This document shows positions 27,720 to 61,040 of a stretch of 64,000 bases of DNA, piece by piece; within the stretch, counting starts at the first letter, position 1, and each line of letters begins with the position of its first letter. The notes under the pieces were generated by a model. That model did not search any database. It was not told the origin of the DNA and was given only the letters and a program-made list of their open reading frames with translations. The position numbers were made by a program, and so were the translations under genes. The DNA is from Pavona decussata. Taxonomy: Eukaryota. Location: the NCBI GenBank assembly GCA_977016875.1, contig CDRNST010000125.1, positions 248,001-312,000 on the forward strand, in the 5' to 3' direction.

Positions 27720-27864
27720 TTACTCGTCTTTTTCCGTCTCCGGTATGGCGGTATCCTCGGTGGTGGTGTTCTTAGTGATGGAAGCGCTTGGTTTGGAGGA
27801 AGAGAAGGTTCTCTCTCCTTCACTGTCTGTTGACTCGGGTGTGTCGCCGCTGTCAGCAAGATTT
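27720..27864 (-). CDS. Giant protein terminal exon
   Basis: TAG acceptor; NLADSGDTPES...ETEKDE*. Confidence 0.72.
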
Positions 27865-30800
27865 CTATAATGGGTAAAATGGGAAAAGTTAATAGACTGC
27901 CTTAAAATAAGTTTCAGTAAATGGGCCCACTATAGGAAACAGTTTGATAAAAAAAGAGAGATAATATCGAAATACTTTCAAAGAGGTTCCTCTGAGGTTC
28001 CTCTCAAAAGCTCTATTTCACCGGAACTTTACAACCCAACTGTAACTATAACTATAACTAAAAATATATAGCGCATTATCCATAAAAGGTTCTAATGCAC
28101 TTGACAGTGTACCTGCATTGGTTTTTAGCGCTCAGGGAACACTGTTGTGTTGTTTGTTCTTTTGACCTCTCGACCAACCATGCAAGACGTTACTAACGGT
28201 GCAGGTCTCCCCACAATGTTTATTGAATTCATTTTCTGCATGACCGTGTAATAACACGGGTCCGCAAGTTAAACGGTATGTTAAATTGGCCAGCAGACGC
28301 CCTTTCCGACTTTTGCTTCAAAAGCTAAATTCTTAAGGACGGTAGATCCTAATATAGACATATTTTTTCGCGGTTTACAGCTATGCGGGAAAAGCTGCAG
28401 ATCTTGGCAAGGGCTGTTGAAATTCAAAACTGAGAAAATTGAGGCCACCTCAGATTCCTTAGTGGATTCCAACATCCCTTGCTAAGATCTCCTTTTTTGG
28501 GGTAGTCATAAAACGCGCAAAATTTGTATTTGTAGGCCATAGTCCTTGAGAAGTCAGAGTTTCTTGAACCATCTCGAGATGCGCAGAACTTATGCTAGTA
28601 AAAAAGGAGGCAACGTCGTGAATTGATCGATCGAACCTCGCACTTCATGATCACTTTAAAGTATTACACTGTCTTGTGCGACGCAACAAATAGCACCGAG
28701 GAAATTACTGCTCAGTAGTTCCTTATTCAGTTGGATCGTCAGACGTTAGTCTGTAAAGTTAACACAGCAAACTACGCCTCAATCCGCCTCTCTCATTTGA
28801 ATGGCAACACATTGGACTCAAAAGTTAAAACTGCGTTTGTTCGGGATAGAAGGAAAAACAAACAGACAAACAAAAACAACCACGCGTGAAGGAAGTTCTT
28901 GTAGGGTAGCTTTCCTTCGATTAGTCACGCCTAAGCATTTTATCCAAAGATTACAAAGGTACTAAGACTACATTTTTTAATTGCATTTTGCACACCAAAC
29001 ATTTCGGGGGTCACCGACCGCATTTGAACCAAGAAAATAAGGAGAACAATCTGCTTACTTGCGTACCGGATAAGCTTTATTTAATTAAATATTTTTGCTT
29101 TTGTTTGTTGGTTTGTTTGTATTTTCCATTACCAGATCTCAGATGATATTCCTTACCGGAATTTCTTCGCCTTGGTTCTCCGACTTAGTTTCTTTCCCTT
29201 TGCACCCAAGCCGCCCTCCACGGAGCTCGCACCTTTGGAATCCGCGGAATGAGTTGCAGAGGGGGAATCCAACAGGCTTTCGTGCATTGGGTTCACAAAG
29301 CCCTCTTTCGGTTTAAAGGCTGCAAAGGAGGTTTCCGCCTCGGGTTCGTCCTCACTGCCTGCTGGAGTATCGCCCTTTTGACAACTGAGGCGATAAGACT
29401 CTTTGGACCTCATCCTCATCAGACCTAAAAATAATACAATTATTTTTATAACTGAAAAACAAATTAAATAATAGCATGATGTCTTGCGACACAAACGACA
29501 GAGCAGATGCGTCAAGTTCTGGAGGTGCCAGGTTGTTCAAAGAGGGGATAACTCTATCGAATGGATGAATCACTATCCAACGAATAAAGTGTACTCCAAC
29601 CAATACATTTTATCCGCTGGATAGCGACTTATCTGCTGGATAAAGGTATCCGCTCTTTGAACAACTGGAGCCAGGAATCAGCTGTTAAGGAAGAGCTCGC
29701 GATAGCCTAAGAGGAGATATGTATCGGTTTAAAGGGAAAAAGATAGCAACGACTGTGTAATGTTCAGCTCATTGAGCTATTGTACGACACAGAACCGGTT
29801 TTAGAGTCCAACTATACGGACACCCGATTTCAGTAGCTCTTCAAGTGTTGCCTCTCATTCTCATGGCCATTACACGCCATTCTTTTGTCTCTGGACACAT
29901 TGACTGTAGCTTTGTGTACTACGTGTGCGTGTAGCAATGTGACTTTGAGTGCAAACGTGTGTAGGTCAGCTGAGTTATACTTTCACTAAAGGACATTAAC
30001 AACATATGTTATGACTATGTCGTGCATGATGGAGTAGTTTTTGTTTTGCGAGATCCTCCAGTTATACCCGCTGCAAGACTGGTCTGGAGGAAGGGATCAT
30101 ACAAAGAATAGCAGGTGGTAGCAGGATAACTACCCACACCGTAAAACCAATCAGTTACCCAGACCCGTACATATACTTCAGCCCTTTCAATGAGTTGGCG
30201 GATGGAATGACCAGCGCTTGCCACTACAACTAAGGCATTGGTACACCAAAGAAGAATGACGCTAACCCTCGGATAACGCGCAGTATGCAACATTAACCGC
30301 TCAAGGGAACCATTAGGTTCGGATGTCGCCGCTCTCTAGGGTCCTGATGTAAGAGAAGGTTAAGCGTGTGAGGGGCTAAGCATATCTGTGACGTAACTGA
30401 GAGGAGTGGTGAGGGGAGTAAAGTAGCTCGGACTCCTTTTCCCTGGGGGTAGGGAGCTTAAAACTGCAAGTCATAGTGTCATCGCCAAACGGTAGGCCCC
30501 ACCTCAGAGTTATAATCAGTTTGAACACAGGGTGTTACCATATCGTAAATCGGTGTCTATGTCATAAATTGTGTACAAGTTACCTGTTAATCTCCGCTTG
30601 GTGCTTGTCCTCTTTGGTCCACGATCACTATCTTCATCCAGCAGTTCATCGTCACTTGCATAGCGGCCCATCTGATGGATATCGGGGGTGCCCAACTGAG
30701 ATGACAGGACCCTGAATTAATCGGACAAAAATGGAACTGATATTACCAAATATTACATAGAAAAGACACTGTCTGATTGGTCAAAAGCTGTGTTTTCTAA

Positions 30801-30907
30801 GTGTACCACGTGACGTACATCAAAGGTGCAGACAACGATATACTAATATCCAATTTATAATATACTAAACATTGGGGATTTCAATTTGTCGGTATCCTGA
30901 TTGATTG

Positions 30908-30943
<36 letters not shown>

Positions 30944-33900
30944 TTGTTTATTTATTTATTTGTTTGATCCGTTTCTTTCCTATAGACTTAAGGAACGCAT
31001 GTAAAATAGGCAGCCTTTCAGCCTCCTGTCACTTAGAAGTTTTCATCTATAGTCATGTTTAATTTAGATAATTTGTCTCTGATACAATGTTCGAGTGTGA
31101 GTCCCTGTAAAGCTGCTTGGGGTAGCTACGTCCACTTTTACTACAATCAACGCAGTTTACTTTACCAGTGCGTGTACTGTAAACTCACATCTGTGTAGCT
31201 TTGGGAACGGGGCGCAGCGTCTTAAGAGCGCCCGAGTCCAATCCACCTGTACTCGGCTGAATCTTCTCTCGTTTTGTGCTCATGGAGCTGCAGTATGGAA
31301 GCTCGATCTCATGAGTTCTATCTTCAATCCTACGAATGGAAAACATAGGTGATCACTGGAGATCAACAACTAAATTTCCCTAACAATAATATATAATTCA
31401 TTAAATAACTAATAATAATTACTTTGAATTGGATGTCAAACGTAACCTCATGCTTACGTTGATTTCATCTCAGTACGCTGCGTGCAGTGATTCGACCACT
31501 TGGAAGTAAAATATTCCCTGTGCTGCACACATTTTCTCGCGCTATTCACTTGTCACGTGCACTGTCTTCTAGTTCTTATTGGTTAAGTCAGACGTTCGCG
31601 ACTCACGGACAACAATATGAAATAAAATGTTCCCTTTCTTTGCTTTTTGTTGCTTTTTGTCATGCGACTGCGAAAAATTCTTGTTTTAGTTTTCGATGTA
31701 TTGCCAATGTACATACAACGACACCAAGAAGCGTCAAAAGCAGAACACGTACTGGTCACCACGAGCCACAAATGTCTTAACCTTCCCTTATTACTACCGG
31801 GGTGGTTACATTGGTTTGGTCTCATTCATTTTTTACAACATAATAATCAATCACTTCATTTAAGTGCCAATGTATTTAGCGCAGAGCACTAACAGGGGAC
31901 ACTTTCCAGATTGAATTGGAATTTAGAAGTGTTGTTTTTTTGAGGAGAGGGGAAAACCGGAGAACCCGGAGAAAAACCTCTCGGAGCAAGGACGAGAACC
32001 AACAACAAACTCAACCCAAATATGACGCCGAGTCCGGGAATCAAATCCGAGCCACATTGGTGGGAGGCGAGTGCTCTCACCACTGCGCCTTCCCTGCTCC
32101 TCCAAATTGATAAAATACAGTTTCTTTCATGGCTAATAAACAGTGTAAATTACCTTTCAGTTTTAATCTTCTTCCTTCGAACCCACCATAGAAGAACAAC
32201 AATTGCCAAAATCATCAGCAAAGCACTACATGCGCCAATAACAATCCATTTCCAGGTCTCCCCTTCCTCGTTTCCCGCAATCACAATCTTCGCTGTGGTT
32301 TGATCACGTGATGCTAGGACAGCCCCACCGGAAGTCTTGTCAAGCTGGATCCAGATCACGCTCTCTGGCGCCTCTTTGTTGTTGTTCTCAACGTTGATGA
32401 TGAAAGATTCGTTCCACTTGCCATCAGCTAGAGAGATTTTCCCGGATGCTGGCCACAGCAAGCTTGTGCTGTGCAGTGACTCGTTTTGATATAGGGACCA
32501 CTGAACTGTGATATCACCTTGAGAGCCTTTCGCTCGCCGAACTGGAATTTCCAGTTTAGTGACGTGTCTTGTTCGGGCAACTTTCACCACACCCTCTTTG
32601 TCGTACACTTTATTGAAAAAAAAAAATTATTCGTGTTAAATAATCAACGGACAAATTAAGTGACTCCAAAGGTCTTTTTACACCTTCGTCTTTTGATGCA
32701 CAAGGCGTGATAATACGCGATTTCAGCGCGATATTGCTGTACGTTCTCTGAGAAACTCTGCAAGTTTGTATCAAATTTCAAACATGTTCGAAAACCTCTG
32801 CGATATATCGCAGCGACAAATCGCGTTAAAATCGTTGCTAGATTACACAGGCCATTTAAACTGAACTGCAACTTGAGTGCGACAAAAGTTGCACAAAAAT
32901 CTCAAGTACAGTGTAACGGGTCTTTGCTTTAATTTCAGTGTTTAAATTATCTAAGGACGCAACACAAATAAAATGACTAAATGTCCGTTGAAATCTTTTA
33001 AGTACACGGAACATTAGCTAGGGGACTGGTGCTGCCACTGGAGCAACTATTTTGAGTTTCAAAAAGTGGTTTCGATGTACACGTTTTGGTAGAGAAAACG
33101 CACTTGTCTGGTAAATTACGGCCGCAAAACATGGGATACAGCGAGGTACAGGGATATCCGAGAAACAACCAAAATGTTTGTCAGGGACTCACTGGGCGAT
33201 TTGCTGCCCACTTTGGGGCGTTAGCCGGTATATACCTGCGTACGTGCCTTGCGTGTTGTGTTGTGTGCGTGTAAATCATATCTTACTAACCAAGTACGAG
33301 GTTAGTACTGTAAGTTAAGGACCGAGTTTTTCCCCCGTTGATTTATGGCCGTAAATCAAAGGGGGAAAAAGGATCCGTAACTCACAGTACGGACCGAGAA
33401 AACGAGGTTAGAAAGATATTTGTTCTATCTCTGAGATTAATCGGGCGTGCGGGAAAGGACACTTTCAAATTTAGCGGGCCGTATAGTGAAATACGGCCCG
33501 CAAAATTGACCAATTACATCGCGCGTACTGACTATGACATAAGCTGATGCGTTTCCGACCTTTCAAGTTAAATTATTTACATGTAAATCTGCCTCCCTAG
33601 TTCTTTAACTGTACCTTTGGTCTGTACCTTTAATTTCATGTATTTAAGTGCTATTTTATGTCAGTCTATTTTTTTAAAGCAAAGGTAACAATTAAGTGTT
33701 GTGTGTAAATGTAATACACTTACCTGAGTTGTTTTTGTCGAACAAGACCAGACCATGCTGAGCGTAGAATGACCAGAGGAAGGCAAACTGAGTCAGATGA
33801 CACACCTTGACTGTCAACAACTTGATTGACCGGTTCACGTGACTCCAGGGCTCCGCACAGGTGAGAGAGGCGTCGAACCTTAGCAAAGCAAATATGATAA

Positions 33901-36900
33901 ATGAAGTTGCTGTACACAAGCTTAAGCTACATTGTTTTACATAGCAAAATAATCACATAATGCTGAACGCTTGAACAGACAAAACCGTCAATTATCCAAA
34001 TGTCGCTCTTTGGCCTCCTATAAGCATAGGAAGAAAGCCTAAATGGGAGTGGTCTAATTCATCAATTAACAGATTCGGTCAGCATGTTCCATGCCTGTAC
34101 GTTGGTGGAAAGAGAGTCAGATTAGATTCTATACACGTGTGAAAGAATGGCAAGGAAAAAAGTAGAGAGGGCTTCTTGGGGATGCTGGCATCTCTTCTCG
34201 GCGATACCAAATTTCCGCACCATAAAAGCGAGGACTTAAACGTTTGTCAAAATTTTCAGCGGCTTTCTTTCAATGATTTCCCATGCGTGCTTGTAAAATG
34301 AGTGATGAGGTAAGGTTTCCAACTTAACTGTGAAGAAAAGCGGCGGGAAACAGTGTTGATACCGAATCTCACAAGAGACAGTTTATTGCTGGTATCTTCT
34401 TTAAAAGCAAGAATTAAAAACTTCAACAACAAAGTTATATTTCGCCTTACACGGGAAAACCTCAGGTTTTCACCCACAGATTTTAGTCAGAACCAAATTG
34501 ATCAAGACATGCATCTTATACTCGATGACCATGACAAATCATTGAGGTTGTGAGAATACAGAACACGGTCATTAAACGCACCGTGACATGGTTAATTAGT
34601 GTGCATTCGATTGACCTTATTCCGGAATAGGAATACATAAAACGATGACAAGTAATCCATCATAAAAAGTTTTAGGAGTAACTGGAGTACGAGAGGACTC
34701 CTAATTAAATTATCATGTATTAGCGAAAAAAGTTTGACTTACCAAATTACTTAAAAAGACAAATTTAATAGCTGTCCCGTTTTATCTTATTCCGGAATAA
34801 GGCCAATCGAACGGAACGCACGTCTTTCATTCTGGTTGAATCCAGATTTCTCATGGACACTAGACTGAAAGACTATTATGTTCAACGACGTCGTAACATT
34901 CTTAACATTCTCAGATTATATGAACTACAACACAAGAAATCTTACCATGTTTCGTTTTCCGGATCCCACAGATACAACACAGGATCTATGTCTTCCTTTT
35001 GGACCTCATTGTTGACGTACTTGTCGTTGGCCTTCACCAGTTTATCGACGTCGTAGAACATAGAAATGGTGATAGGCTTTGCAAACTTGTAGCCTTCCTT
35101 GACCGTGTTGTTCGCTGGATCCAGCGCCTTAATTACAAAACTGTAGTTCCCAAGCATGAATTGCTGCCGGGGGAAAGTAAAAGTATTCTGTGTAAAGCCG
35201 CGAAATGGACGAAATTTATCAGTCAAGTGAAAAGGGAAAGGGCGATGAGAAACAACAAGCAGGTGAAGTTTTAAAACAAGAATGATAGAGTTAACAAATC
35301 GAATGTGGTTTGGCGTTGTCTGTACTCTTATCGACAACGATATTCGTCATCACAGTGGTCAAAATTTGTTGTGGACTCACTCGGCGCACAACATTTTGAC
35401 TACTGTGATGACGAATATGGTTGTCGATAAGAGTGCAGACAGCGGTAAACCACATTCGATTTGTTTTTACCACAATATCAACGTCAAAAAATTTTTTACA
35501 ATAACGCTCAAAATTTGCACGCGCTGATTGACGCGAGCAGCGTGATCTAGACTCTTATCGACAACGGAAAATCAGCCAATCAGATTGCGAGATTAGAAAA
35601 AATTGTGGTAAAAAGGATATTAAGCGTCAATCATACAATGTTAGACCGTCAGTCAGCCAGTCAAATAGTCAGTCATCTGCGACAGTCATGCAAGACAGTC
35701 ATTTAACGAGTCAGGAAGCCAGACAGCCTGTCCGTCTTTCAGGTAGGGAGTCAGATAGTCAGCGGTTGAGAAGACAGGCTGCTAAATCAGACAGTCGATC
35801 CACAGGCAATCAGTCAGGAGTCAGTCAGTCGCCATATCATTCATTTAGTCCGTTAGTAACTTAGGAATCAAAATAGTCAGTCAGCCACTCAGTGAATTCA
35901 ATAAATAAGTGAATCAGTGAATCACTTATTTAGACAGTCAATAAAGTAGGATAACCTATCGGTTAGTAAACCATAGAAAACAGTTCTATGTGTCCTTCTA
36001 GATTTGTGAACCAAGAAACTCTTAAAATAAAATAGTAGGGCACAAACCTTAGGCTTAGTGTCTTTTGGGTTGCTAACAGGACCCTCCTCAGTCCTGTTCT
36101 TCTTCAGTGCATCATTGTCCAGACTGTACGAGCGCAGCTTTACTTCGCCTTTAACTGCTCCCTCAGGCACAGTTAGTGTCCCGTATGTCTGCCCCACTCC
36201 TCCATCCTTGCGCGACCCGTTTTCATTCACGTTCACAGTATCGAAGAAAAACGAGGCAGACGACTTATTGTCAAAGACGTATTCCGACTTTCCAACCACG
36301 ATACCATTTGAAGACAGTCTGTTGGATAGTAAACCAGCACCATTTGTTGCTCTTACGGTAGCAAAGTACTTCTTCCCTTTTCCGAGAGCGTTGTCTTTAA
36401 ACTTAGCAAGCCATATCGTTGTGTTAGTGACCTCTTCAAACTCCTTGACATCGGTCAAGCCAGGCGCAGTTCCCCAGGCAACCTCGTATGACGTCACATC
36501 ACTTTCTGGGTCACTTGCGGCGAAGTATGCAAATATTATGTCAACGAAGACCTATGAAGGGAACAATACACATTAATAAACTGCCATTTTTCTGAGAGAA
36601 CCTTGCGATTCGAAGCATGCATTGTGTTATTAAGAGCCATGTCTTTGTTTCTTGTAGGGTGGATTGTAGATTCGGTACATAATATGTAGCTAGAGATAAT
36701 TTAAAGGGGTGAGCTTCATTCAATTACAAAGGAAGTATAAGCACCAAGATAAAGGGAAAAGCCGGGTTTTTATTACTTAAATGGAAACAAGCGCTAAATG
36801 TTCATTACCTGGAAGTCCATATCAGGTCCCATAATTCCGTCTCTGACGTATTCCATCACAGGTGGTGTGGTGTCTATGCTAACGCCATCACTGTATGTCG

Positions 36901-39900
36901 CTGAACATCTGCAGGCTCCATTACAGGCGACCACTGTAACAAAATAAGAATCACCATGCTGCAAATTAAGTCCATAGTGACTTCCGTTTGGCCTCACTCC
37001 AGTGCTTTCGCATACCCGGATGTCATCTTTCATTGGCTGAGTCCCCACACACCAGAAATACTCGACGATGTCACTTTCGTTATCCAAGAAGTCAATCCAC
37101 CTGGCGTGAATCTCGCGAGTATTGTTGGTAAAGTCGATATCGGTGTCTTCAAAACTTCGAGTGGAGCATTGACTGTTTTCGCCAAAGGTCGAGTTCTCGG
37201 AGCAGTTCGTATTTGGATCACTGCCAATTCCATCGTACACGACCCCAACTTCTGGAGCCGTCGAGTCGATAACGAAAGACTCCGAGAGAGAGCTGGTTGA
37301 TTGACCAGCTCGTGTTGTTTCAAGCAGCTCCACGGTGTAGAGGTTTTCAGAGCCAGGGACAAAGAGGGATCCATTCATCAGGTTGATGTTCAACCCATTG
37401 GTTTCGCTATTCACCATCGTTGTAGAGGGACAGGAAACAGAATCACAAATACTTGATGTAAAACTGAACGGATCGTCGCTCTGAAGCGGTGAACACGTCA
37501 TTCCTTTGCATGTGGAGCACATTTCTGCAAATCCACCAAATGACTTCCGTCCTTCTTCGCAAGGGATACATTTTACGATACCCAAGCCATTAATCTGAGA
37601 AACTCTCACGCGGTAATGGTTAATTGGGCAATATGTTGCCGTATAGACTCGTCCTGTACCTAACGCCTCTCCTTGTCCAGGCCATGTAAGAACGCCGGGA
37701 GTGCCAATCAAAATTGTATTATGTACGAAGGACACTGAAGCTCGAGGAATTCCATCATCCACCCTCAACCCATTCTCGCGCGAGATAGCTCGTCCGAGGT
37801 TCACGCATCGACCAGCCTCATACTTTGAATATATTCCCTGGAAACCAATCAACTGCACCCCGTCTCGTCCCCCTATCGTCTGCATGCCTAGTGCAGTAAT
37901 GAAACCTCCATCGCGGGCGTTAACATCCAGATCTCCACTCAAGTATTCCTCTGGTGTAACAGCAACAAAATTACACACCTCATGGTAGGATTTTGTTGTG
38001 GTGTTAAGTTGAAGAACTTTTGCCAACCTGGAAGCTTTAGACACCACAACAAGGGCTTCAGTTTCTGTAAGACGAATAGACAGCGGGCCAGTGACGTTCC
38101 GGTGTTTATCAAAGCAGATGGTCTTTTGGAGGGTGGTCGTTTCGATGGAGTAAACAGAGATGCACGAATTCTTCTTTTCCCCTTCTGCTATTGCCAGGAG
38201 GTGCTTGTTTAAAGACACTGAATGCCCAAAGTTACGGTCCTTCTTTTCTTCTCCAAGTGCTTTCATAAACGACCACGCTCCTCTATTTTCCTTGAAAATA
38301 CCCACGACACTAGCGTTCGTAGTCAAATTGGTTCCAGTAACAGCAATAACGTTGCCATGAATTGCAATGTCCTGGCTTATGTTGTCTGCCCATAAATTAT
38401 CGGCAGGACAATCAGCTGCTGAAACAGTCTTGCAATTGCTTAAAACTACGGTCTTCGTCAATTGTAGATTTTCACGGTCATCCATGCTGCTCTCATAAAG
38501 ATGTGCTTTATTACTCGATAAGAAGACCGACCGGTTACCATGTGCTATCACTTTTATTGGCATCGCAGTTGAGCCAGCAATGTCATCTGACATGGTGATG
38601 TGGCTTGCACTTCTGTTTTCACGGGGAAGGGCGAATGCTTTATCGGCAGATCCAATGGCAAAATAGCCATTCGGCAGATGAGCCACAGAAGCACCAAACT
38701 GTTTGGACGGTAAAGTGGCTTTGAAGTGTGTGTCGGTGAACGCAACTTGCGGGTCAACCGGGCACTTGGCACAGCACGGTCCCTCGGGATCAGCAAATCC
38801 TGGGAGGACTTTCATTATGCTCGAGTCTTCAGTTGTGTTGCTTTCGTTTTTGTCCGATGTCACTCTTTGGACAATGATCTTGAACTCCTTCGTTGGACTG
38901 AAAAGGTTGTGGTCCAGACGGAAAGCTGTTCTGTTGCTGGTATCATTTGAACCGCTTCTTATGACCAGCTGCAACTCTTTTGGAAAAGATATGTACTTCA
39001 CATCCTCGTCTAATGCACTTCGGTTAACTTCAGGTAATGTCAAGTTTGGCAGCCATCGTAAATGCTCTTGTTCAGCACCAACATCTCGGATGTGTAAACC
39101 CCTTTTCGGAGGAGCACTGGGTTCGATTCTCAGACCATCGCTGGCAGCCTCAGTGTAAATATCACCTTCGTTCCAGACCCTCACAACTCCCCGGTAACGC
39201 TCCCATGGTTCCAAGGACACACTTCGGATTGTCACATTTCGTTGCCAAGACAACACGTCCATAAACTCATGTACGAAAGGTTCGCTACTCCATGATTTCT
39301 CCGTGACAAGGTGTGGTAGAGACAAGTTTGAAGAAGGTTGTGTGACAGCTACCTGAATACGCAAGCGCGAGATGTCTTTAATAAAGTTTCCCATGATCTC
39401 CCACTGAAGCGACAAACTTTGCATCAAGGCTTGCCAGTCAATATCCGTCAGATTGCCTGCGTCCAGACTTGGAATATCGATAACCTCCACAAGCTTTGGT
39501 GCGATGGAGATGACCTTGCATTGTTCAGACACCAAACGAGTTTTCATACCGACTCCATTCACAGCGTAGACAGTAGCGTAAAGCACCGTGCCTGATGCGA
39601 GTCTTTTGACTATGGCTGTGCCTTTTGGCTTTACTCCAACTGACTTTAACGCTAACACATCACATTGTCCCTTAGATGTTCCAACGCACCAGTCATACCG
39701 CTCCAGTGTGCTCTCTGCATCTTCAAATTCATCCCAGGTGGAAGTCAACAGTTCCTCGGAGCAACTAAATCGAACATGAGAGCTTGCTTGTATTTCATTG
39801 TAGGCAAGCATATCGCTACCACGAGGAAGGGAACTGTTTGAATTTCCTTCAGTGGTAGGCGGAACTTGCGTCGTATTGACCAAAACGTTGTCTGCATCTT

Positions 39901-42900
39901 TAAGTGTCGGAGGCGTAGAATCGATCGAAACTCGGTTAGATGTCGTCTCCGATGATAAACCAATGTGATTGGTTCCTTTTACGACAGCATAATATGACTC
40001 TCCGTGGACAAGCTGTAAACCACGCACAGTTAAGCTTGTGTTCAAGCCGACGTTAATGAAAGTAGTGATGGTGCAATTTTCAGGTATGGTACTAACACAG
40101 ACTTGGTATTGTGAGATACCAGTTTCGGAATCAATAAACGAAGGCCAACTGCGGAAAAAAGAGGATAGAGTTAGTACGTAATCAGTAGATAAGCATGTGG
40201 TCGAAACAGCCAGCGTCCATTAAGTGACTAAGTGACGAGGAGTGTTACACCTCTCTCTTCACCGCTGAAAACAAGCTTGGTTAGCTCTGCAACTTTAATG
40301 AATTTTTCTATAGGACTAATTTACTTAGAGTAGTACCCTTCACCTCCAAAGGATTTTACTCTATCGAAAGTCCCCCCCCCCCTGTACTCACTCACTCCCA
40401 CAACAAAAATGTTGTTACACTTCCTCTAACAGTTATCTGATGTCTGTTACACAACTAGGTTGCATGGAAAGACACAAGTACCTCGTTTCAGGTAGTGCGA
40501 CAAAGACCTGAAGTCGAATTCACGGAGTTCGCCAGGATAAGGTGTGTATTAAGAATTTATTGGATTATAAAACCTGTTGAACTAATACTAACGGTTCGTC
40601 TAAACAGCCAATTAACGTATTATGAACACCAACCCGTGACTCGAACGACTGACCTTTCAATCGCTGGAAGAAATATTTTACTGTATCACGATATCCGTTT
40701 GTTTAAGGAGCGAGACTATTTAATATTGGCAATCAAACAAACAAATTTGGCAAAACTGGGCCGTTAAATGTGAAGGAAGTAATGGCAAAATGGTATTCAC
40801 CTCCTACAACGAAATAACAGCTTTTACCTGACAGTAAACTTGGTCAAATCTGATTGGTACTTAGCAATCTCGGGTCCAGCACCCAGCCGTGCTTCGCTTG
40901 CCGTGGGAGGGGTAAAATCGACAGTGAATCCATCAGAGGAAGCCTGGATCTGAAGTCCAGCAAAGTTGACTGCTCTGACGATGAAAAAGTACTGAACACC
41001 GCTTTCAAGGTCTAATCCTATGAAAATGACAAAGAGAACAAAATCATTACTTACGTTCTTTACTATGTATTCTACGACATAGCATTTTGACCAATTAACG
41101 TATACGTAATAAATAGACAAATATAATGAACTGCGAAAGGAAAGTTCCTTGGAGATGCGTGATACTTGAAAATGTTATCGGTTAGGATTGATATAAAAAT
41201 AAATATCAAAAAGTGTCAAAAACGGTTTTGAAAAAAACACAGACGTTTCGGGTATATAACCCTTCTTCAGTGTGGAGAAAACCGCATCGAATAGACAAAT
41301 ATGTCGACCAAATAATATATTAAATAGAGATGGCTGATTTTACGGTTCGGAAATTATATTGATGATGTTCTTCATGGTATTACACAGAATACCCTGAAGA
41401 AGAAATTTCCGTACTTTTTTTAAATATTTGAATCAATATATTTCCCGAACCGTGAATTCAGCTTTGGTTTTTTTTATATATTCTATGTTCGATAATAGGC
41501 CATTTTCGAGTTGCTGTGAACCTCACTATGAAAGCGAGGCTAAGTGCAAAACTTTTCATATGAAAATTAGTTTTGTTTGCATACGAATGAAAACTAATTT
41601 TCATAACAAAAACTTTGCACTTAGCCTCGCTTTCAAAATGAGGTTCAAAGCAACTCAGAAATGTTCTAATTGCTACAGGATCCGGTGCTTTTATTTTATT
41701 GCGCTGGTCGGCGTATTGCACTCTTTGCAGTTGCTTTGGCCTCACGCTTCAAAATGTTACAAACTTCCTCAGGTTATGCAACCACAAAACGGTAGTTGTT
41801 TGTTTGTAAACGTTTTGAAATTAAACAGAGACTGTACTTGAACAAAGTTTACAACGTTTATTGTCGCGATGGCTTATTAGTTATTAGAAAAAAATATATC
41901 AAATCTAACCTGTAATGGTAATGTTAGTTGCTTTCCCAACCCCAGTGAAGGTTTGAGGGCACGAAGATAAGTTTTTAGCATCGCATAAAGCTACTTCGTA
42001 AGACTCGATACCAGACTCCAAGTCCTCAAAGCCAAACCAGCGTGCGCTGACATCATCCTCGCCGTTCAGATAATCCACATCTGAAACGACTCCGTCGATT
42101 ACAGAGCCAGATATCGGTGGTGTATCGTCAACTGTCATGCCATCTGATGTAAGAGACGTTGTCACCCCAGCGCTGTTTGTTGCATTTACGGTGATGAAGT
42201 AGCGCTGACCGTTTTTAAGCGGCTCAGTGAGAATCTTGTGAACGGACGTACTGACTGGAGTTAGTGACGATTGTGCAACAAGGTCGCAGGAACCTGGTGA
42301 TGAGCCTGCGCACCACATGACCTCCACAACGTCACTTTCCAGATCTTCAAAGGCGCTCCAGTGAGCTGATGTATGGGTTGTACTTCGCTGAATGTCAACA
42401 TCCTGGTCTTGCTTAGCACCGTCAAGAATTTCACCTCCGTTAACAGGCCCTTAAAGAAACAATACCATTGAGTGAAACAAAACTACAAAAGTACAACATG
42501 GAGGCCTCGAAGAATGTAAATGATTTCTAGATTATCAGTTAACACTCAGCCAACAAGGGAAACAAAATTTTGGTTAGAGCGAAATCCTCACAAACAAAGA
42601 AAGACCCTGTATCTATCTATACGACACTAAAATGGTCTTCTTCTCTTCTTTGCATTTACGGCTATATCTTTAGTTATCAAACGGTAGCAGAACGATGCAA
42701 AATCATATTCCATTGCCAGCTGACAGTTTCATTTGAATTCATTAGTTCTAGGAATTTCTGAGTGCATGAAGAAAACGTTCTTTAGCTGACAAATTCCCTT
42801 ATTGTTTGCATAACAATTGTCAACTAGGCTGTGATCATCTCCACAGAATGTATAGTTATGGATGGACGAGAAAAACAGGGATAGTATTTAAACAAAAAGA

Positions 42901-54900: not shown

Positions 54901-57900
54901 TGCGGACGCATGGAGTTGTGCTTTCAAGGAATATTTCCTTGATTTGCTGACAATCGGGTAACTTTCCAGCCGTCTCGAGTATAGGCGAAAAATTGTTTGT
55001 GAAAGGCTTTAGCTCTCTTAAAACTGTCATCACCTCACGCACCATCGATTTGATATCTCGCAATTCTGCCTGTATCTCGATGATAGGATCTTTAATTCTT
55101 CTAAACTTCGAGACCGCTTTCCCAATAAATTTATCTGCTTCTTTGTTGAAAAAGTTGTTGACTTCTTCCACAACGTTGTAGCCTCCAAATTTGTGGAGTG
55201 TTTCAGATGCAATCGTTTTAAACTCGTTACAGACATCTCGTACGCGTTGATCAAAGTCAATCCCGAACTGCTTTCTTAAATCCAGCTTCTGAATTTCACT
55301 TCTGTAATTTCCAGCTCTGTTCGAAAAATTGATGACATCATCTGCTGCTTTCCTTGCTTTGTTCGCGTAAACAGGAAGATTTTGTAGATGCTTCAGGACA
55401 TCATTGATGCGAGTTGCTATATCTCGAACAGTTTTGAGAAATCCTTTTTTAGTGTTTAGAATTGATAGAAAATCGGATATGATTTGGGCGACGCGAGATA
55501 TCTTGCCAACTCGAGCCGCTAGATTTTCCTCGTACCATGTTTCGACTTTCGTGACAGCAGACTGCAATTCCGCTCCGACTGTTTTAATCCTCGATGCCAC
55601 AGGCCCAATAAAAGACGCCAGTTCGACGAGAGCTTCACGAGCTTTCTCTTGAACGTTGTCGATAACATCCGCAGAAAAATCCGCGGCTTTGTTACAAACT
55701 CCATCTACCTTCGACGCGGTTCCGTTAGCAAAGTCCACGATGTCGTCTGCCAGATCCTGGATATGTTTCAGTTTACCAGTAAGTTCTTGTAGAGCGTCAG
55801 ATGCGAACCCTTTTGTTGCCGCTGAAAAGTTGCGTTCAACTTCGTCTATTAAATTGTCTACAAGAATTGTGAAGTTAAGTAGTTCCGTGAGTGCATTTTG
55901 CGCTGTATTCTCGACCACTTGAAGAACCTGGATCCATTCCTTCTCAACGTTTTCTCCAAACTCTTTAAATTCCTGAGAGGAGTTCAAAGCCAGTTTATAT
56001 ACGCCGCAAATCCGCTCTACGTTCTGCCGAGCAAACTGCTCCACTGCGGGTCCAAGTTCTTGAAAGAAATCTGTAATATCACTGATGGCTGTCACGTTTA
56101 CAAATTGAGAGTCAAGGAAATTAATAAGATTCCCTAAGAATTCTTGGAGGATTTCAGCCGGATTTGTAGAATTTGTGTTGTGACTGCTGCCCAAGAGTCC
56201 CTTGAACAAGTCCCTCAGGTCCAAGCTGTTACCAGGCAGTATTTCTTGGAAGAACTTTTCGAGGTCAAAATTCGGGAGTCTAAATTGCTTGAGAAAGTCG
56301 CCTACCTTTCTAAAAATGGAGAGGAAGTGCTGGAAGTTGGGAGATTTTAGATCCAAATTAAACTTCAAGCTGATTCTCCAGTTGAAACGAAGACCGAAGT
56401 TAAAGCCACTTCCTTGAAAAGGTGGAAAACGCGAGTTCATGTCTGGTAGCTGCAATCTGGGAAGTCGGATTCCTTCCAGAAAATCCAGCAGCGAAGACAT
56501 GTCCAAGAAACGGTTTGCAAACCGCAGAAGTTTCAAGGTGACTAGTTGAAAAGATTCCAGTGAAAACGAGAAGTGGATTGTGAACTTGAACGGAAGCTGC
56601 AAACGAAATCCACCAGGCATGGTAGCACCTAACGAGTTGAAGTAATCTTTGATCTTGTCGAGGTGGAGATCTGTGGACACAGAACGAAGAATTTCCAGAA
56701 GGTTCTTGATGTTGAAGTTTCCAGGAAGATCGTGGGGTAAGAACTTGGTTATGCTGGCAACAACATTGAGTATTTTGTCCAGGGCTCCAATCACTTTTTT
56801 AAAGATATCATCCACAACGGTCAGCCTTCCAAGAGTCTGCTGGATTTTCTTGATCCTGTCAATGAGCCATTTCCAATTCTTCACTCGGTTCAGCACATCT
56901 TTGGCAAACTTGATAACCTTGCCAATTAGGTTGATCGGCCGAAGAGGCTGGACAAGGTTCTGGACAAACTCAACAAGTTTGTTGACAAAGTCTACAAATT
57001 TGTCAATGTATAACGGTAGGTAGCCAGCTAGCTTGTTCTTAAATCTGTTAATTTGTTCGGCAATTACGCTTGTGATACTATCGAACTGTTTCAGCAAATC
57101 ATCTCCGGCGTCTGCAATAGCGTGAATGAGATCTTTGGGAAAGTCATTCTTAAAACTAGCCGACGCTTTAAAAGCCGCTTTACCTCTAACGACATCAAAA
57201 TTAAACTTGAGAATGTGAGCTCGAACGTGAGCATAGTTGTCTAGATTCACCTGAAACTTCCCACCAAAGATGCCAATTCTTAGCTTGACTTGGTTCACGT
57301 ACTGTATCACTGATTCTGCACCGACCCATTTACCACCGTACGTTTTTACCCAACGCTTGGAAGGACCAAGAGCAAACTCTCTTGGACGAAGGAACGGAAA
57401 TAGCGCACGCTTGCGACGATGAATTACGCTACGTTTCTTTCGAAGATAAACTGCTTTGGGGTGGTCACCATGGTTTTCTAGAAACTCGTTTATTGATGAA
57501 TCCAAAGTCTCGCTTTCTGGAGCGTCCCATAACGCATGCTCCAGACCTTTGACCACCGAATTACTTAGATGCTGGTGACGCTCTACGAAGATGTTAACGA
57601 CTGCAGCTTTTACATCACTTTGTTCATCCGCGTAAAGAGCGCGCATCAGGTATTGGTTGGTTTGCTCTGGGGGAAGCTTGCGCATGGCTGAAATCACCGC
57701 TGATCGGATACCAGAATTATCGTGATCAATGTGTTCCACGATAACTGGAAGTCCGGAATGGTGCCCAAGATTTCCGAACGCCCAGATGTGGTCCCGTAAC
57801 TGCATCTCGTGATCTTCGCTATCAGGATGGTAAAGAGTTGACTTGTTTCTGTATCTGCTGTGAACCATCTCCGCAACAGTGTCACAAAGCGTTTCATTAT

Positions 57901-60900
57901 AACCAGCTTTCTTCGCTCTTTCGGCAAGACCAGCTAAGACCAGCATAGCAGTAGCTGTCACTTCATCGCCTTTTTCCTCTTTCGTCATCAGCTCTGCAAG
58001 GGCATCAAAAAGCTCTGAGTGAAGTGGTCCTTCCGGTAGGTAGAAAATACCAACCAACAAATCTTCATATTCTTCCTTGCTTAGGGGTCTTGGGTACTCT
58101 CCCTTCACGGCTCCCGCTAAGGCTTTCTGAGCTTCGTACTTGCCGTGTCCGGCAAGGACAGCGACATACACTGCCCACGACGTCAAGTTTTGGTGACTGC
58201 GGTCCTGAACCAGTCTTGCGATTGTACGAAAGATTCCTTGATCATCTCGAACCATGCGGTGCAACTCATTGGAACAATCACCAATGTCGCGTTCCTTCAT
58301 ACTCTTGTCAGTAAAACAACGTAGTACCTCATAAAGAGGCCTCGTCGTCTCCTTCTTCTCTCCACCCAACTTCGACCACTGTATCTTCTCGGTGTCTGTG
58401 AATGGGAGACTGTCACTTATGAGTGATTGCTCTGTTTTTAGATGTTCTTCTTCCACAGTGGAGCGCTTGGAACGTCTTTGCCCACGGTCTGAACAGGATC
58501 GTAACGTTAATCTACTGTAGCCACTGGTGGACATCTCGATATCTTGCTCTTCATTTTGAAAGCCTTTAAAATTGTCCGCTCTCGGATGACCATTGGCAGG
58601 CCTAAAGAATGCTTTTGTTGAGCGCTGAACTTGTTCGACTTTTCCATCTTTTAAATAAACGTTAGCGCTGTGCTCAGACTGTACCTTGTGTCTAGCTTTC
58701 GCAGGCGTTCCATCTGCAAATTGTTGGTAGTCATGGTTTGTCCACGTCCGATGGAGATGAGCGTGTGTATCGTTAGCGGAGAGGACATTGTATTTTGTTC
58801 GAAAGACGCCAGAGTCATCGTGTTCTTCGACTTCATAGGTGTTGGATCTATGGATGTCCTTCAAGTTAAGCTGAAATGACCCCGCGATGCCTGCCACCAG
58901 ATAACAAACAAAATGAATTGGCTATTATGATGCTTTGCTCAAACCAGCACACGCTTTCCTCGTAAATCGTCAATTGACAAAATTTCCCTGGTACGTTTTC
59001 GCGGGCTTAGTTGATTTGGTGTTAAAAAAGGAAAAGAAAATCCAAAGGAAGTTTTCCAAAGTGCTCCCGTGAAGGAAGTTTTAGCTTTGGCTTCAATTTT
59101 ATGCACGCAAAACTGGAAATTTACAAGCTAAGTTGTTTTCGTTCTTCATTGCTCTCACTGCTAGATAACTTTTAACGGAAGCCATGGTCAACCTTAGCTA
59201 TTAGTCGTTGGTTGTCTAATGAAGGAAACTGGTATACCTACATAAAATACATCATAGTTCAGAATTTATCGTGACGTTATGCGCTGGTCCATTCAAAACT
59301 TCGGCATACCCCCTCCCCCTCCTGAGCATTTAAAGTTTTTAAAATTGGCTTGTTCAAACTCCTTGCCAGTGAAAAGGCTCCCAAGTGACGCATAGGGCGA
59401 AGACAAAAATTGGCACGATTAACGAGCCGAGCTCGGTGTGGGGTGAAAAAGAAAGGGAGGGAGCCTGTGGACATTCCTTTGATGCCCCTGTTCCGTCTCC
59501 TGGTAATCAACCTGTGAGTAATAAGTCAACAAGGTACTTATATGCCAATCATTCCGCTCGATTGAGTCGTAATGTCAGTAATTTTTGTCGATAATATCAT
59601 TCATTGGCGAAATACAGCGAGGACGAATCATTTTGATCATGACGATGATGATGCTGATAATCATAATCATTATCATCATTATCATCGTCATCATCATCAT
59701 CATGATCATCATCATCATTGTTATGTTATTCGGAACTGTCTCAAACTCGTCAAGCTTGGCGCTTGGGACACTCGTATTCAGCACTTTATATTAGCCGTTG
59801 GAACCGTAAATTTCTTTTAGTATCCGAGGAAGCAACCTGAAGATAAAACTCTCGCTGAAACCAGTCAGTAAAAATTCTAAAAACAGCTTGCTTTTTAGCT
59901 ACAGACTGTAGGCATACCTTCCGCTCATTTTGTAAGCCTAGGGATAAGAGGAAAAAAGGATTCGCTCGAATTTCGCCCCTCCAAACCGACTGCAAGCAAG
60001 AAGCTCCAGCTTCATCGAAAAACTATGCAAATGTACACTGTGACACTCAAATAATTCAATGTGCTCTTTGCAAAGCTATCAACAATCACGTATCTAAGCA
60101 ATTACATCATGATACCAGAACCTGGTATCGTTGAATGGCGGCATCAAAAGAAGGTTGAAAGCCTCCCTCACTTTCTTGCTCTTCGTGCCGGTTTCTGATA
60201 CTCTCTCCGCCTTATACCCCACTAGGGAGTCTGTTCATAGGCTATAAAACTCCCAGTCCTCTGGACCAAGAACCTCTTCAAATACCCTACCTTCCAGTGC
60301 CCAAATTTCAGAACCCCCCCCCCCCCCCAAAAAAAAAAAATACTTTCGGCTTCACTCAATAGCTTTCCATGCTTGTAGGCAGAGATATATTAAACAAACA
60401 TTCAACAATCCTTTGAAGAGCCTTTTGCGTGAGTAATTCACTCACGAAGGCAAAATTATGTCATTTAAAACTCCTAAATAGCCATAAACTAGGAAACAAA
60501 AACGCGAGAAGTCCCCCTAGACTATAAATCTGATTCAAATGTCCACCCTTCCCCTGAAGAAAATATCAAACTCCCCCCCTCGGGGGAAGGGGGGGGGGCA
60601 TGCACCTAGTCCAATGCCCGGGGTAAGACCGATGAATGTTCGGGGTTTCACTTGATCGGCGCATTGAATAAACCGAAGTGGTCAATAACACTCTATCTCG
60701 AGACTTTGCCTAATAAGACTTCCATCGGAAAAATCGAAGCTGAGCTGAAAAGACAGTTTGAAATTTCTACAATAACAATGTTGCTTTTACCCTTTTTGAA
60801 AGCAGCGATTTCCGGTGATTCCGAAGTCTTTGGAAATAGCACGTCTGTTACGGCACCATGCTCTTCCTGCCGGAAGTAAAAAGGCTTCGACAGCTTCTCT

Positions 60901-61040
60901 TCAAACTCTTCATTGACAGGATGATTAGAAAGAACGCGCCCATAATGCACACGTCTTAAGCGGGGTTCTCTGACGTCAAGCTTGATAAGACGCACAGGCT
61001 CCAAACCACCGTAGTCACGTGACGTGGGAGTGATGTCAAC
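27720..61040 (-). CDS. Giant predicted type-I membrane protein (>6,895 aa): lipid-transfer (vitellogenin-N-like) module, helical region, FN3-like repeats, propellers, Calx-beta-like domain, TM; 5' end not identified
   Basis: 15 exons with GT-AG ends and consistent phases: 60791-61040, 46822-58890, 44375-46017, 43001-43643, 41910-42449, 40828-41017, 36809-40148, 36048-36551, 34946-35163, 33724-33878, 32154-32607, 31189-31329, 30584-30711, 29157-29424, 27720-27864. Total 20,688 nt ending in TAA. Domain names come from motif recognition by eye. Confidence 0.85.
29157..29424 (-). CDS. Giant protein cytoplasmic-tail exon
   Basis: Frame of ORF 29153..29515; phase 1/2. Confidence 0.72.
29526..29674. 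mobile_element. MITE
   Basis: GTTGTTCAAAGAG..GGATA / TATCC..CTCTTTGAACAAC inverted ends. Confidence 0.6.
30584..30711 (-). CDS. Giant protein cytoplasmic-tail exon
   Basis: Open in phase 2/1 with CAG acceptor and GTAAC donor. Confidence 0.7.
30901..30962. repeat. (ATTT)n microsatellite
   Basis: Direct reading. Confidence 0.85.
31189..31329 (-). CDS. Giant protein cytoplasmic-tail exon
   Basis: Open in phase 2/2 with TAG acceptor and GTGAG donor. Confidence 0.72.
31869..32099 (-). mobile_element. tRNA-derived SINE
   Basis: A-box-like GGCGCAGTGG and degenerate B-box GATTTGATTCC, followed by GGTTTTTCTCCGGGTTCTCCGGTTTTCC core. Confidence 0.7.
32154..32607 (-). CDS. Giant protein exon: Calx-beta-like domain and transmembrane helix
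   Basis: IPVRRAKGSQGDITVQW...SGKISLADG...IWIQL; TM WIVIGACSALLMILAIVVLLWWV followed by RRKK. Confidence 0.88.
33724..33878 (-). CDS. Giant protein exon with CHLTQFA motif
   Basis: FDASLTCAEPWS...KVCHLTQFAF; phases 2/1 fit both neighbours. Confidence 0.85.
34601..34821. mobile_element. MITE
   Basis: TTCGATTGACCTTATTCCGGAATA...TATTCCGGAATAAGGCCAATCGAA. Confidence 0.55.
34946..35163 (-). CDS. Giant protein exon
   Basis: QFMLGNYSF...PVLYLWDPENETW; AG/GT ends. Confidence 0.85.
35293..35465. repeat. Long hairpin (about 80-bp arms) repeat element
   Basis: AACAAATCGAATGTGGTTT...AAACCACATTCGATTTGTT. Confidence 0.75.
36048..36551 (-). CDS. Giant protein exon (last FN3-like repeat, start of ZU5-like region)
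   Basis: SYEVAWGTAPG...GTLTVPEGAV. Confidence 0.88.
36809..40148 (-). CDS. Giant protein exon (FN3-like repeats, FG-GAP-like propeller, Cys-rich segment)
   Basis: 1083-aa ORF extended to the acceptor at 40149; FGASVA, FGHSVSL, ILIGTPG, CIPCEEGRKS. Confidence 0.9.
40828..41017 (-). CDS. Giant protein exon
   Basis: LDLESGVQYFFIVRAVNFAGL...DFTPP. Confidence 0.88.
41222..41285 (-). ncRNA. Minimal type I hammerhead ribozyme motif (Penelope-associated type)
   Basis: Minus strand GCGGUUUU-CUC-CACA CUGAAGA AGGGU-UAUAU-ACCC GAAAC GUC UGUG-UUUUUUUC-AAAACCGU. Confidence 0.7.
41494..41671. mobile_element. Foldback MITE
   Basis: Near-palindrome around GAAAGCGAGGCTAAGTGCAAA / TTTGCACTTAGCCTCGCTTTC. Confidence 0.75.
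41910..42449 (-). CDS. Giant protein exon (FN3-like repeats)
   Basis: Frame of ORF 41905..42327 extended to the AG at 42450. Confidence 0.88.
43001..43643 (-). CDS. Giant protein exon (FN3-like repeats)
   Basis: 225-aa ORF; AG/GT ends. Confidence 0.9.
44375..46017 (-). CDS. Giant protein exon (FN3-like repeats)
   Basis: 566-aa ORF with DxTPP/ESG/WCxGT repeats; AG/GT ends. Confidence 0.9.
46822..58890 (-). CDS. Giant protein 12,069-nt exon
   Basis: 4027-aa ORF; acceptor GGCAG|GCATC, donor CAGG|GTAAGT. Confidence 0.93.
59636..59718. repeat. (ATC/GAT)n low-complexity microsatellite
   Basis: Direct reading. Confidence 0.85.
60791..61040 (-). CDS. Giant protein exon (N-terminal beta region, vitellogenin-N-like)
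   Basis: VDITP...LSKPFYFRQEEHGAVTDVLFP...EIAAFKKG, continuing in phase into IAGSFQLN of the next exon. Confidence 0.82.

Follow-up and report, generated by a model that had tools for sequence, protein, structure and literature searches.

The window analysed here, a stretch of 64,000 nucleotides from the coral Pavona decussata (contig CDRNST010000125.1, hereafter C125, positions 248001-312000, in a genome of 602 Mb), carries on its minus strand a single, expressed gene that encodes a type-I membrane protein of about 6,900 amino acids. This protein joins an N-terminal large lipid transfer (LLT) module to a long amphipathic region, a beta-propeller, a stalk of about 30 FN3-like repeats, a single transmembrane (TM) helix and a cytoplasmic tail. 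It belongs to a real membrane-tethered branch of the LLT protein (LLTP) superfamily, with an architecture that is not described for this superfamily in the searchable literature. To our knowledge, every characterised LLTP is soluble, being either secreted or luminal in the endoplasmic reticulum (ER): vitellogenin, apoB, apolipophorin, MTP, and the crustacean clotting and glucan-binding lipoproteins. A membrane-anchored member therefore differs from all of them. Positions below are in window numbering unless C125 is written.

A stop-to-stop scan found one open frame of 4,035 codons (58921-46817, minus strand), followed by shorter open frames in line with it. We built the exon model by aligning the window to the orthologue from Montipora (P0012, 6,916 residues) and inspecting the splice sites border by border; this natural orthologue was also the basis of the full-length analyses, with the window exons searched one by one. 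Identity between P0012 and the window exons was 63-84% per exon, and every junction inspected was of the GT..AG type and in phase. The exons are as follows.

61040-60791, minus strand: exon 2, strands of the LLT beta-barrel, contains PFYFRQ (P0012 residues 68-151 at 70% identity, tblastn)
58890-46822, minus strand: giant exon of 12,069 nt (75% identity to P0012 151-4175)
46017-44375, minus strand: E3, FN3-like repeats
43643-43001, minus strand: E4, FN3-like repeats
42449-41910, minus strand: E5, FN3-like repeats
41017-40828, minus strand: E6, FN3-like repeats
40148-36807, minus strand: E7, FN3-like repeats and an insert of about 620 residues
36549-36048, minus strand: E8, end of the repeat array
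35163-34944, minus strand: E9, membrane-proximal domain leading to the GPS-like motif (82% identity to P0012)
33876-33724, minus strand: E10, carries the GPS-like motif
32607-32153, minus strand: E11, Calx-beta-like stretch, TM helix and RRKK
31328-31189, minus strand: E12, cytoplasmic tail (junction 32153|31328 present in spliced contigs)
30711 to about 30586, minus strand: E13, cytoplasmic tail (a loose contig end falls at 30710)
about 29430-29160, borders approximate, minus strand: E14, cytoplasmic tail (weak co-linear similarity to the P0012 tail)
about 27900-27720, borders approximate, minus strand: E15, cytoplasmic tail (weak co-linear similarity to the P0012 tail)

The giant exon holds the remainder of the LLT module, the helical region, the propeller, a long-strand sheet, 16 whole FN3-like repeats and the first half of a 17th. 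Exon 2, bounded by the acceptor CCCTCAG| and the donor G|GTAAAA, was recovered again by a genome search. The initial annotation had counted 15 exons and more than 6,895 residues, which agrees with the 15 exons and about 6,900 residues found within the window, and the PFYFRQ motif of exon 2 and the FKKG|IAGSFQ junction are present as it described them. The signal-peptide exon is the part that did not fall inside: neither a similarity search nor a scan for signal-peptide-like open frames found exon 1 within the window, and it is located beyond the window end.

Transcripts tie the stalk to the membrane. We sampled words from 32153-40219, a stretch that is about 58% exon, and found 21-54% of them in 14 public runs presumed to be RNA, compared with 97-98% in DNA-like runs. 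We aligned contigs of four RNA-like runs, from four studies, to 31150-37150. The joints 36807|36549, 36048|35163, 34944|33876 and 32153|31328 were seen in all four runs, as was 33724|32607, which was shifted by one base (33725) in X1 and in one of the two X4 contigs. A single contig of 2,596 nt crosses all five joints, from E7 to E12, and continues into the next tail exon, showing that a single spliced transcript includes the stalk as well as the GPS-like, TM and tail exons. The membrane tether proposed earlier is thus borne out by spliced contigs in which the stalk is joined to one TM helix. Given that the LLT part and the beginning of the stalk both lie in the giant exon, the link between them requires no splicing.

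The junctions from the giant exon to E7 were assigned by orthologue co-linearity alone. These junctions (giant exon to E3 and on to E7), together with a first exon that lies outside the window, are what would favour a split locus or a prediction artefact, in which a secreted LLTP is followed by a separate FN3 membrane protein. We regard this as highly improbable, given that one open frame covers both the LLT part and 17 repeats, that the 2,596-nt contig reaches from E7 to the tail, that all junctions are canonical and in phase, and that full-length models exist in other anthozoans and in two sponges. NCBI models of 6,840-6,916 residues from Nematostella and Montipora are co-linear with the window gene.

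Two further observations concern these alignments. The E10|E11 junction occurs in two forms in different runs: one skips 1,116 bases, the other 1,117 with an additional T. Ambiguous alignment, allelic variation or a minor alternative acceptor could explain the difference. Separately, contigs of the RNA-like runs lie on the intronic stretches 31954-32154, 33361-33561, 34567-34767 and 35170-35772 at a summed depth of up to about 5,300, many of them continuing into dissimilar sequence; these stretches probably represent dispersed repeats, or pieces of transposons, that are transcribed at other sites in the genome.

Between exon 2 and the tail, the following parts were delimited.

58351-57443, minus strand: alpha-helical solenoid, HEAT-like, with AFGNLG and IRSAVISAMR (Pfam HEAT_2, 29 bits; residues 310-625 of model 1)
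57442-57407, minus strand: double dibasic site of the proprotein-convertase type, RKKRSVIHRRKR, at the end of the helical domain (sequence)
57382-57149, minus strand: four long beta-strands where LLTPs have their C-sheet (model 1 strands 633-710; alignment with MTP to residue 731)
57148-54002, minus strand: amphipathic alpha-helix of about 1,000 residues (hydrophobic moment)
53893-53042, minus strand: five-bladed beta-propeller (model 2 residues 38-321, pLDDT about 90)
52945-52850, minus strand: low-confidence or disordered linker with further dibasic sites, before the long-strand sheet (sequence and model 2)
52825-52307, minus strand: Cys-containing sheet of strands of 22-25 residues (model 2 strands 394-566)
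52309-36294, minus strand: array of about 30 FN3-like repeats of about 108 residues each, with the motifs D.TPP and W..F.D.ESG (repeat hidden Markov model and Pfam fn3)
39124-37265, minus strand: insert of about 620 residues in the repeat array (E7), in which FG-GAP-like and Cys-rich ephrin-receptor-like parts may be present
33802-33782, minus strand: GPS-like motif C-H-L|T-Q-F-A (E10)
32242-32180, minus strand: TM helix (translation)
32179-32168, minus strand: RRKK stop-transfer (translation)

The identity of the N-terminus rests on orthologues and on predicted fold. The Pfam family Vitellogenin_N (PF01347) matches orthologues at 29-45 bits against a cut-off of 24, with scores of 40.7 in Montipora, 44.6 in Nematostella, 44.9 in Dendronephthya and 35.4 in P0016 (profile positions 112-544), and 33 of the 52 gene-family members match it at E <= 1e-3 (best 5.7e-16). 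Both AFGNLG and IRSAVISAMR, earlier read as HEAT-like helices, lie within the Pfam HEAT_2 match. Distant matches to query residues 500-617 (P0101, P0105 and P0106) belonged to no Pfam family. Given that searches of PDB sequences with the N-terminus and with a 56-sequence profile returned designed HEAT repeats only and no LLTP, a comparison of folds was needed. An AlphaFold2 model of P0012 residues 22-1000 from 56 aligned sequences (model 1) comprises a beta-barrel at residues 20-263 (predicted local distance difference test, pLDDT, 60-84), a solenoid of about 17 helices at 310-625 (pLDDT about 90), four long strands at 633-710 (pLDDT 55-67) and then low-confidence helices. In the four-strand region, G and F columns are invariant among orthologues. 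The 11 top Foldseek matches of this model are all LLTPs, with E-values of 1e-22 for MTP (6i7s), 5.6e-18 for lipovitellin (1lsh), 1e-16 for bee vitellogenin (9enr) and 2.7e-11 to 5.6e-7 for apoB-100. With VIA-align, Z was 16.5 over 539 residues for MTP 6i7s (model residues 12-731), 15.4 over 533 residues for lipovitellin 1lsh, and 15.0 over 281 residues for the apoB barrel (root-mean-square deviation, rmsd, 7.9). Orthologue homology and the predicted fold together support the N-terminus as an LLT module of the vitellogenin/MTP/apoB kind, in line with what had been suggested from the sequence.

Past the module, giant-frame residues 600-1640 have a mean helical hydrophobic moment of 0.383, compared to 0.227 for shuffled sequence (z = 11.4); the moment exceeds 0.4 in 48% of windows, and no other region of the protein is comparable. 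The roughly 1,000 residues of probable amphipathic helix reported earlier thus hold up; a Pfam match to Apolipoprotein A1/A4/E in this region was below threshold. The dibasic site is kept in anthozoan orthologues as RKxR..RxKR. Downstream, a model of giant-frame residues 1640-2210 (model 2, m02c29c7fb400; 42 sequences, pLDDT 72) contains the propeller, which VIA aligns to glutaminyl cyclase 3mbr (Z 18.3, rmsd 2.5, 210 residues) and next to NHL and olfactomedin propellers, and the long-strand sheet. Pfam on 42 orthologues of the propeller and sheet region gave no more than a few NHL traces, language-model atlas searches with this region and with the stalk insert gave scores of only 0.75-0.77, and an atlas fold search with model 2 matched the propeller only.

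An LLT module, long sheets and an amphipathic helix of 1,000 residues make up the set with which apolipoproteins hold lipid, and they led us to read the protein as a lipid holder. Judging by the signal peptide, and by the TM helix with the basic stop-transfer behind it, the LLT head faces the outside of the cell. The tip would then act like an apolipoprotein, its module, long sheets and amphipathic helices binding a lipid patch or a small particle, probably loaded in the ER as for apoB and apolipophorin, and the FN3 stalk, about 100 nm if extended, would hold this load off the cell surface. As happens in apolipophorin II/I, a furin-type convertase may cleave behind the helical domain, with the fragments staying together on lipid, and cleavage at HL|T could release the whole ectodomain. 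From the combined analyses, we favour, at about even odds, a tethered, apolipoprotein-like lipid holder that would be cut at the dibasic site and possibly be releasable at HL|T.

The stalk and the membrane-proximal part bring a different function into consideration. A hidden Markov model (HMM) of the repeat, built from the sequence, finds 32 segments at E-values of 1e-14 to 1e-37, far beyond chance, which amount to about 30 units when intron-split pieces are merged and run from giant-exon residue 2205 to E8. Pfam fn3 matches three exons at 51, 42 and 28 bits (cut-off 25), and the units diverge from canonical fn3; the many FN3-like repeats of the initial annotation are therefore confirmed. Its expected FG-GAP domain was not: the insert of about 620 residues had no Pfam or PDB sequence match, and a protein-language-model search offered FG-GAP-like and ephrin-receptor-like parts as weak leads at a score of 0.77. 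The repeat number stays at 27-31 from corals to sponges (P0012, P0175, P0164, P0168, P0090 and others) despite about 20% identity, which suggests selection on stalk length. Toward the membrane, VCHLTQFA is kept in anthozoan orthologues and in the distant relative P0090; Pfam ZU5 had no match on the membrane-proximal parts or the insert. The single TM helix and RRKK of the earlier reading are found at 32242-32168, and the cytoplasmic tail beyond is about 235 residues long and poorly conserved.

A fixed repeat number from corals to sponges, suggestive of a constraint on length, and a GPS-like motif, a Calx-beta-like domain and a cytoplasmic tail, which are adhesion-receptor features, would fit a lipid-free giant adhesion, spacer or link protein. 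Such a protein would bridge or space membranes or matrix, as the long links of usherin and ADGRV1 do, and would re-use the LLT module as a protein-binding head, for example as an LDL-receptor-type ligand. The barrels of apoB and vitellogenin are ligands of LDL-receptor-type receptors, and the apoB barrel that matches model 1 is the one bound to the LDLR propeller (9bd8). We treat this as the main rival to the lipid holder and as a possible though less than even prospect; no partner is known for it, and an amphipathic helix of about 1,000 residues beside an LLT module would be hard to explain without lipid or a hydrophobic surface.

Several results weigh against the lipid holder or against the assignments on which it draws. 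The sheets that line an open lipid cavity were not detected at their usual position: Pfam DUF1943 and DUF1081, like vWD, had no match in the orthologues or window pieces, an absence that also speaks for the adhesion protein. Only four long strands directly follow the LLT helices; about 1,500 residues further on comes another sheet, with strands of 22-25 residues. The Foldseek search with model 2 gave MTP 6i7s as best match (E 4.6e-7), with propeller matches at similar E-values, and so the long-strand sheet as a displaced lipid-binding sheet is a lead only. For the N-terminus, the window's own exons, searched singly against Pfam, gave only HEAT_2 and no Vitellogenin_N, which reflects a module spread over three exons; the Vitellogenin_N match that had been expected thus appears in orthologues and not in the single exons of the window. 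Model 1 has a mean pLDDT of 64.6, with its barrel in the range given above, and, as its domains are poorly placed relative to one another, it reaches TM-scores of only 0.20-0.27 against solved LLTPs. HEAT/ARM repeat proteins match the helical domain alone at equal Z, and the LLT-specific evidence is therefore the barrel and the co-linear order of parts. Regarding cleavage, the dibasic site is missing in the sponge relatives, and Pfam GPS had no match on the membrane-proximal parts, where the usual CxC lacks its first Cys. The Calx-beta domain anticipated earlier survives as a weak lead: the E11 stretch has no Pfam match, and its single PDB profile match is NCX1 3us9 at a weak E-value of 0.6.

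Anthozoan assemblies yielded about 60 orthologues of the giant frame, each a single open frame of about 4,030 residues, the nearest named relative being the stony coral Montipora capricornis at 75% identity, and full-length models were obtained from Montipora, Oculina (three copies on one contig), Nematostella (LOC5514171) and Dendronephthya. Homoscleromorph sponges have relatives at 19-26% identity, of 7,772 residues in Oscarella lobularis and 7,930 in Corticium candelabrum, with 27-31 repeats and, in Corticium, a C-terminal TM helix. The proposed survey of orthologues thus yields the same architecture in sea anemones, stony and soft corals and homoscleromorph sponges. All orthologues are annotated in databases as uncharacterised, and a literature search that included the Nematostella accessions found no description of the protein or the design, in keeping with the statement of the initial annotation that it matched no named family. 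The coral skeletal 'vitellogenin-like' protein was considered as the same protein and rejected, as it has vWD and a kinase domain.

The 5' end of the gene appears to be multiplied in this coral. A genome search found six candidate first exons upstream, beyond the window, on the same strand and about 4 kb apart.

C125 313238-313426, minus strand: first-exon candidate 1, 189 nt
C125 317229-317417, minus strand: first-exon candidate 2, 189 nt
C125 321408-321596, minus strand: first-exon candidate 3, 189 nt
C125 325093-325281, minus strand: first-exon candidate 4, 189 nt
C125 328253-328441, minus strand: first-exon candidate 5, 189 nt
C125 333464-333664, minus strand: first-exon candidate 6 (distal), 201 nt

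All six begin with an ATG of their own and a signal-peptide-like stretch and finish at a GT donor. They encode 63-67 residues, and their common ending, ...Y-Q-x-H/Y-A-L, is compatible with the first residues of exon 2. The five proximal candidates measure exactly 189 nt from ATG to the GTAAG donor, and the distal 201-nt type is the one present in Montipora and in a second gene copy of this genome. That copy (contig C197, 144484-184011, plus strand) is 69% identical over the N-terminal 620 residues and has its own open frame of 4,039 codons, a single first exon, and much longer introns 1 and 2 (about 17 kb and about 20 kb). The 10 kb upstream of the P0016 gene held neither exon 1 nor exon 2. 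Neighbouring first-exon copies are 78-92% identical in their coding part compared to 66-91% in their flanks, with the coding part the more conserved in every pair compared, by a narrow margin for e2/e3, and an array of alternative promoters and first exons is therefore possible. Most differences between the copies fall in the signal peptide and in roughly 15 residues after it, with the mature part nearly identical, and we therefore read the array as putative alternative promoter and first-exon units and not as a source of protein diversity. Choosing among these units would likely change which promoter or signal peptide is used.

The genome has two paralogues, and the expansion of first exons in this lineage suggests regulated, context-dependent expression; both would suit a cell-surface pattern-recognition or clotting-type LLTP whose tip binds microbial lipids or glycans and which signals or is shed on contact. 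Binding of microbial ligands is described for vitellogenins and for crustacean LLTPs (clotting protein, beta-glucan-binding lipoprotein), so that LLTP membership itself points the same way, as does the extra propeller, of a kind often used for ligand binding. We nonetheless find such a role improbable: no sequence feature is specific to immunity, the alternative first exons alter mainly the signal peptide, and the gene family is 60-75% identical across scleractinians without the diversification typical of recognition receptors. An immune role and a split locus are both less likely than the adhesion protein.

Returning to the tethered lipid holder, its widest form would be an ancient LLTP branch, already present in the ancestor of sponges and cnidarians, with a lipid-carrying head held about 100 nm out on a stalk of fixed length and releasable by regulated cleavage, to which six promoter and first-exon units were added in this coral. 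We consider this full combination doubtful. If true, it would amount to a contact-range device for handing over lipid in animals without a circulation, and would suggest an origin of secreted lipoproteins from a cell-surface form or in parallel with one. The design and the repeat number are kept from homoscleromorph sponges to reef corals, and the protein bears on the origin of lipoproteins and on lipid movement between cell layers in animals without blood; for corals, it bears on lipid traffic in a symbiotic, lipid-rich animal. Given the clear Nematostella orthologue LOC5514171, these questions are testable in a laboratory model.

Elsewhere in the window, a pattern CUGAAGA ... GAAAC GUC flanked by CACA/UGUG is visible by eye at 41222-41285 on the minus strand, in the intron between E5 and E6; Rfam gave no hammerhead match, either at the gathering score over 27000-62000 or at E <= 1 over 41100-41400. 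The interval 16001-20000 has a GC content of 0.52 and a strongly negative AT skew, and the GC content elsewhere in the window is about 0.35-0.45.

Compared with known systems, the first-exon array resembles the protocadherin and UGT1A loci, which have clustered variable first exons, in its tandem first exons upstream of a shared exon 2, and differs in that the coral copies encode only 63-67 residues, with the mature part nearly identical. Usherin and ADGRV1, giant stalked membrane proteins that form long links, likewise have a stalk of about 30-35 FN3 or Calx-beta units, a membrane anchor and a short cytoplasmic tail, and ADGRV1 shares a GPS-type HL|T motif near the membrane. However, their heads are laminin-type or other, with no LLT module, ADGRV1 has seven TM helices, and no search made found sequence homology to either protein.

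By structure, the modelled N-terminus is closest to MTP and vitellogenin/lipovitellin, with alignments that stay co-linear for about 530 residues. MTP differs in being soluble, ER-luminal and about 890 residues long, and vitellogenin in being a secreted yolk precursor with vWD. In both, the lipid cavity is formed by C and A sheets directly after the helices, whereas the coral protein has four strands there and its next large sheet about 1,500 residues on. The apolipoproteins apoB and apolipophorin II/I differ in being secreted and in having no TM helix, FN3 array, propeller or GPS-like motif, and the coral protein differs from them in having no DUF1081, DUF1943 or vWD match in Pfam; the belt of apoB is mostly amphipathic beta-sheet, in contrast to the helical first 1,000 residues that follow the module here. 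What apoB and apolipophorin II/I have in common with the coral protein is an N-terminal LLT module of beta-barrel and alpha-solenoid followed by long amphipathic regions. Furin cuts apolipophorin II/I just after the helical domain, and the coral protein shares a dibasic convertase-type site just past its own helical domain, where cleavage is predicted.

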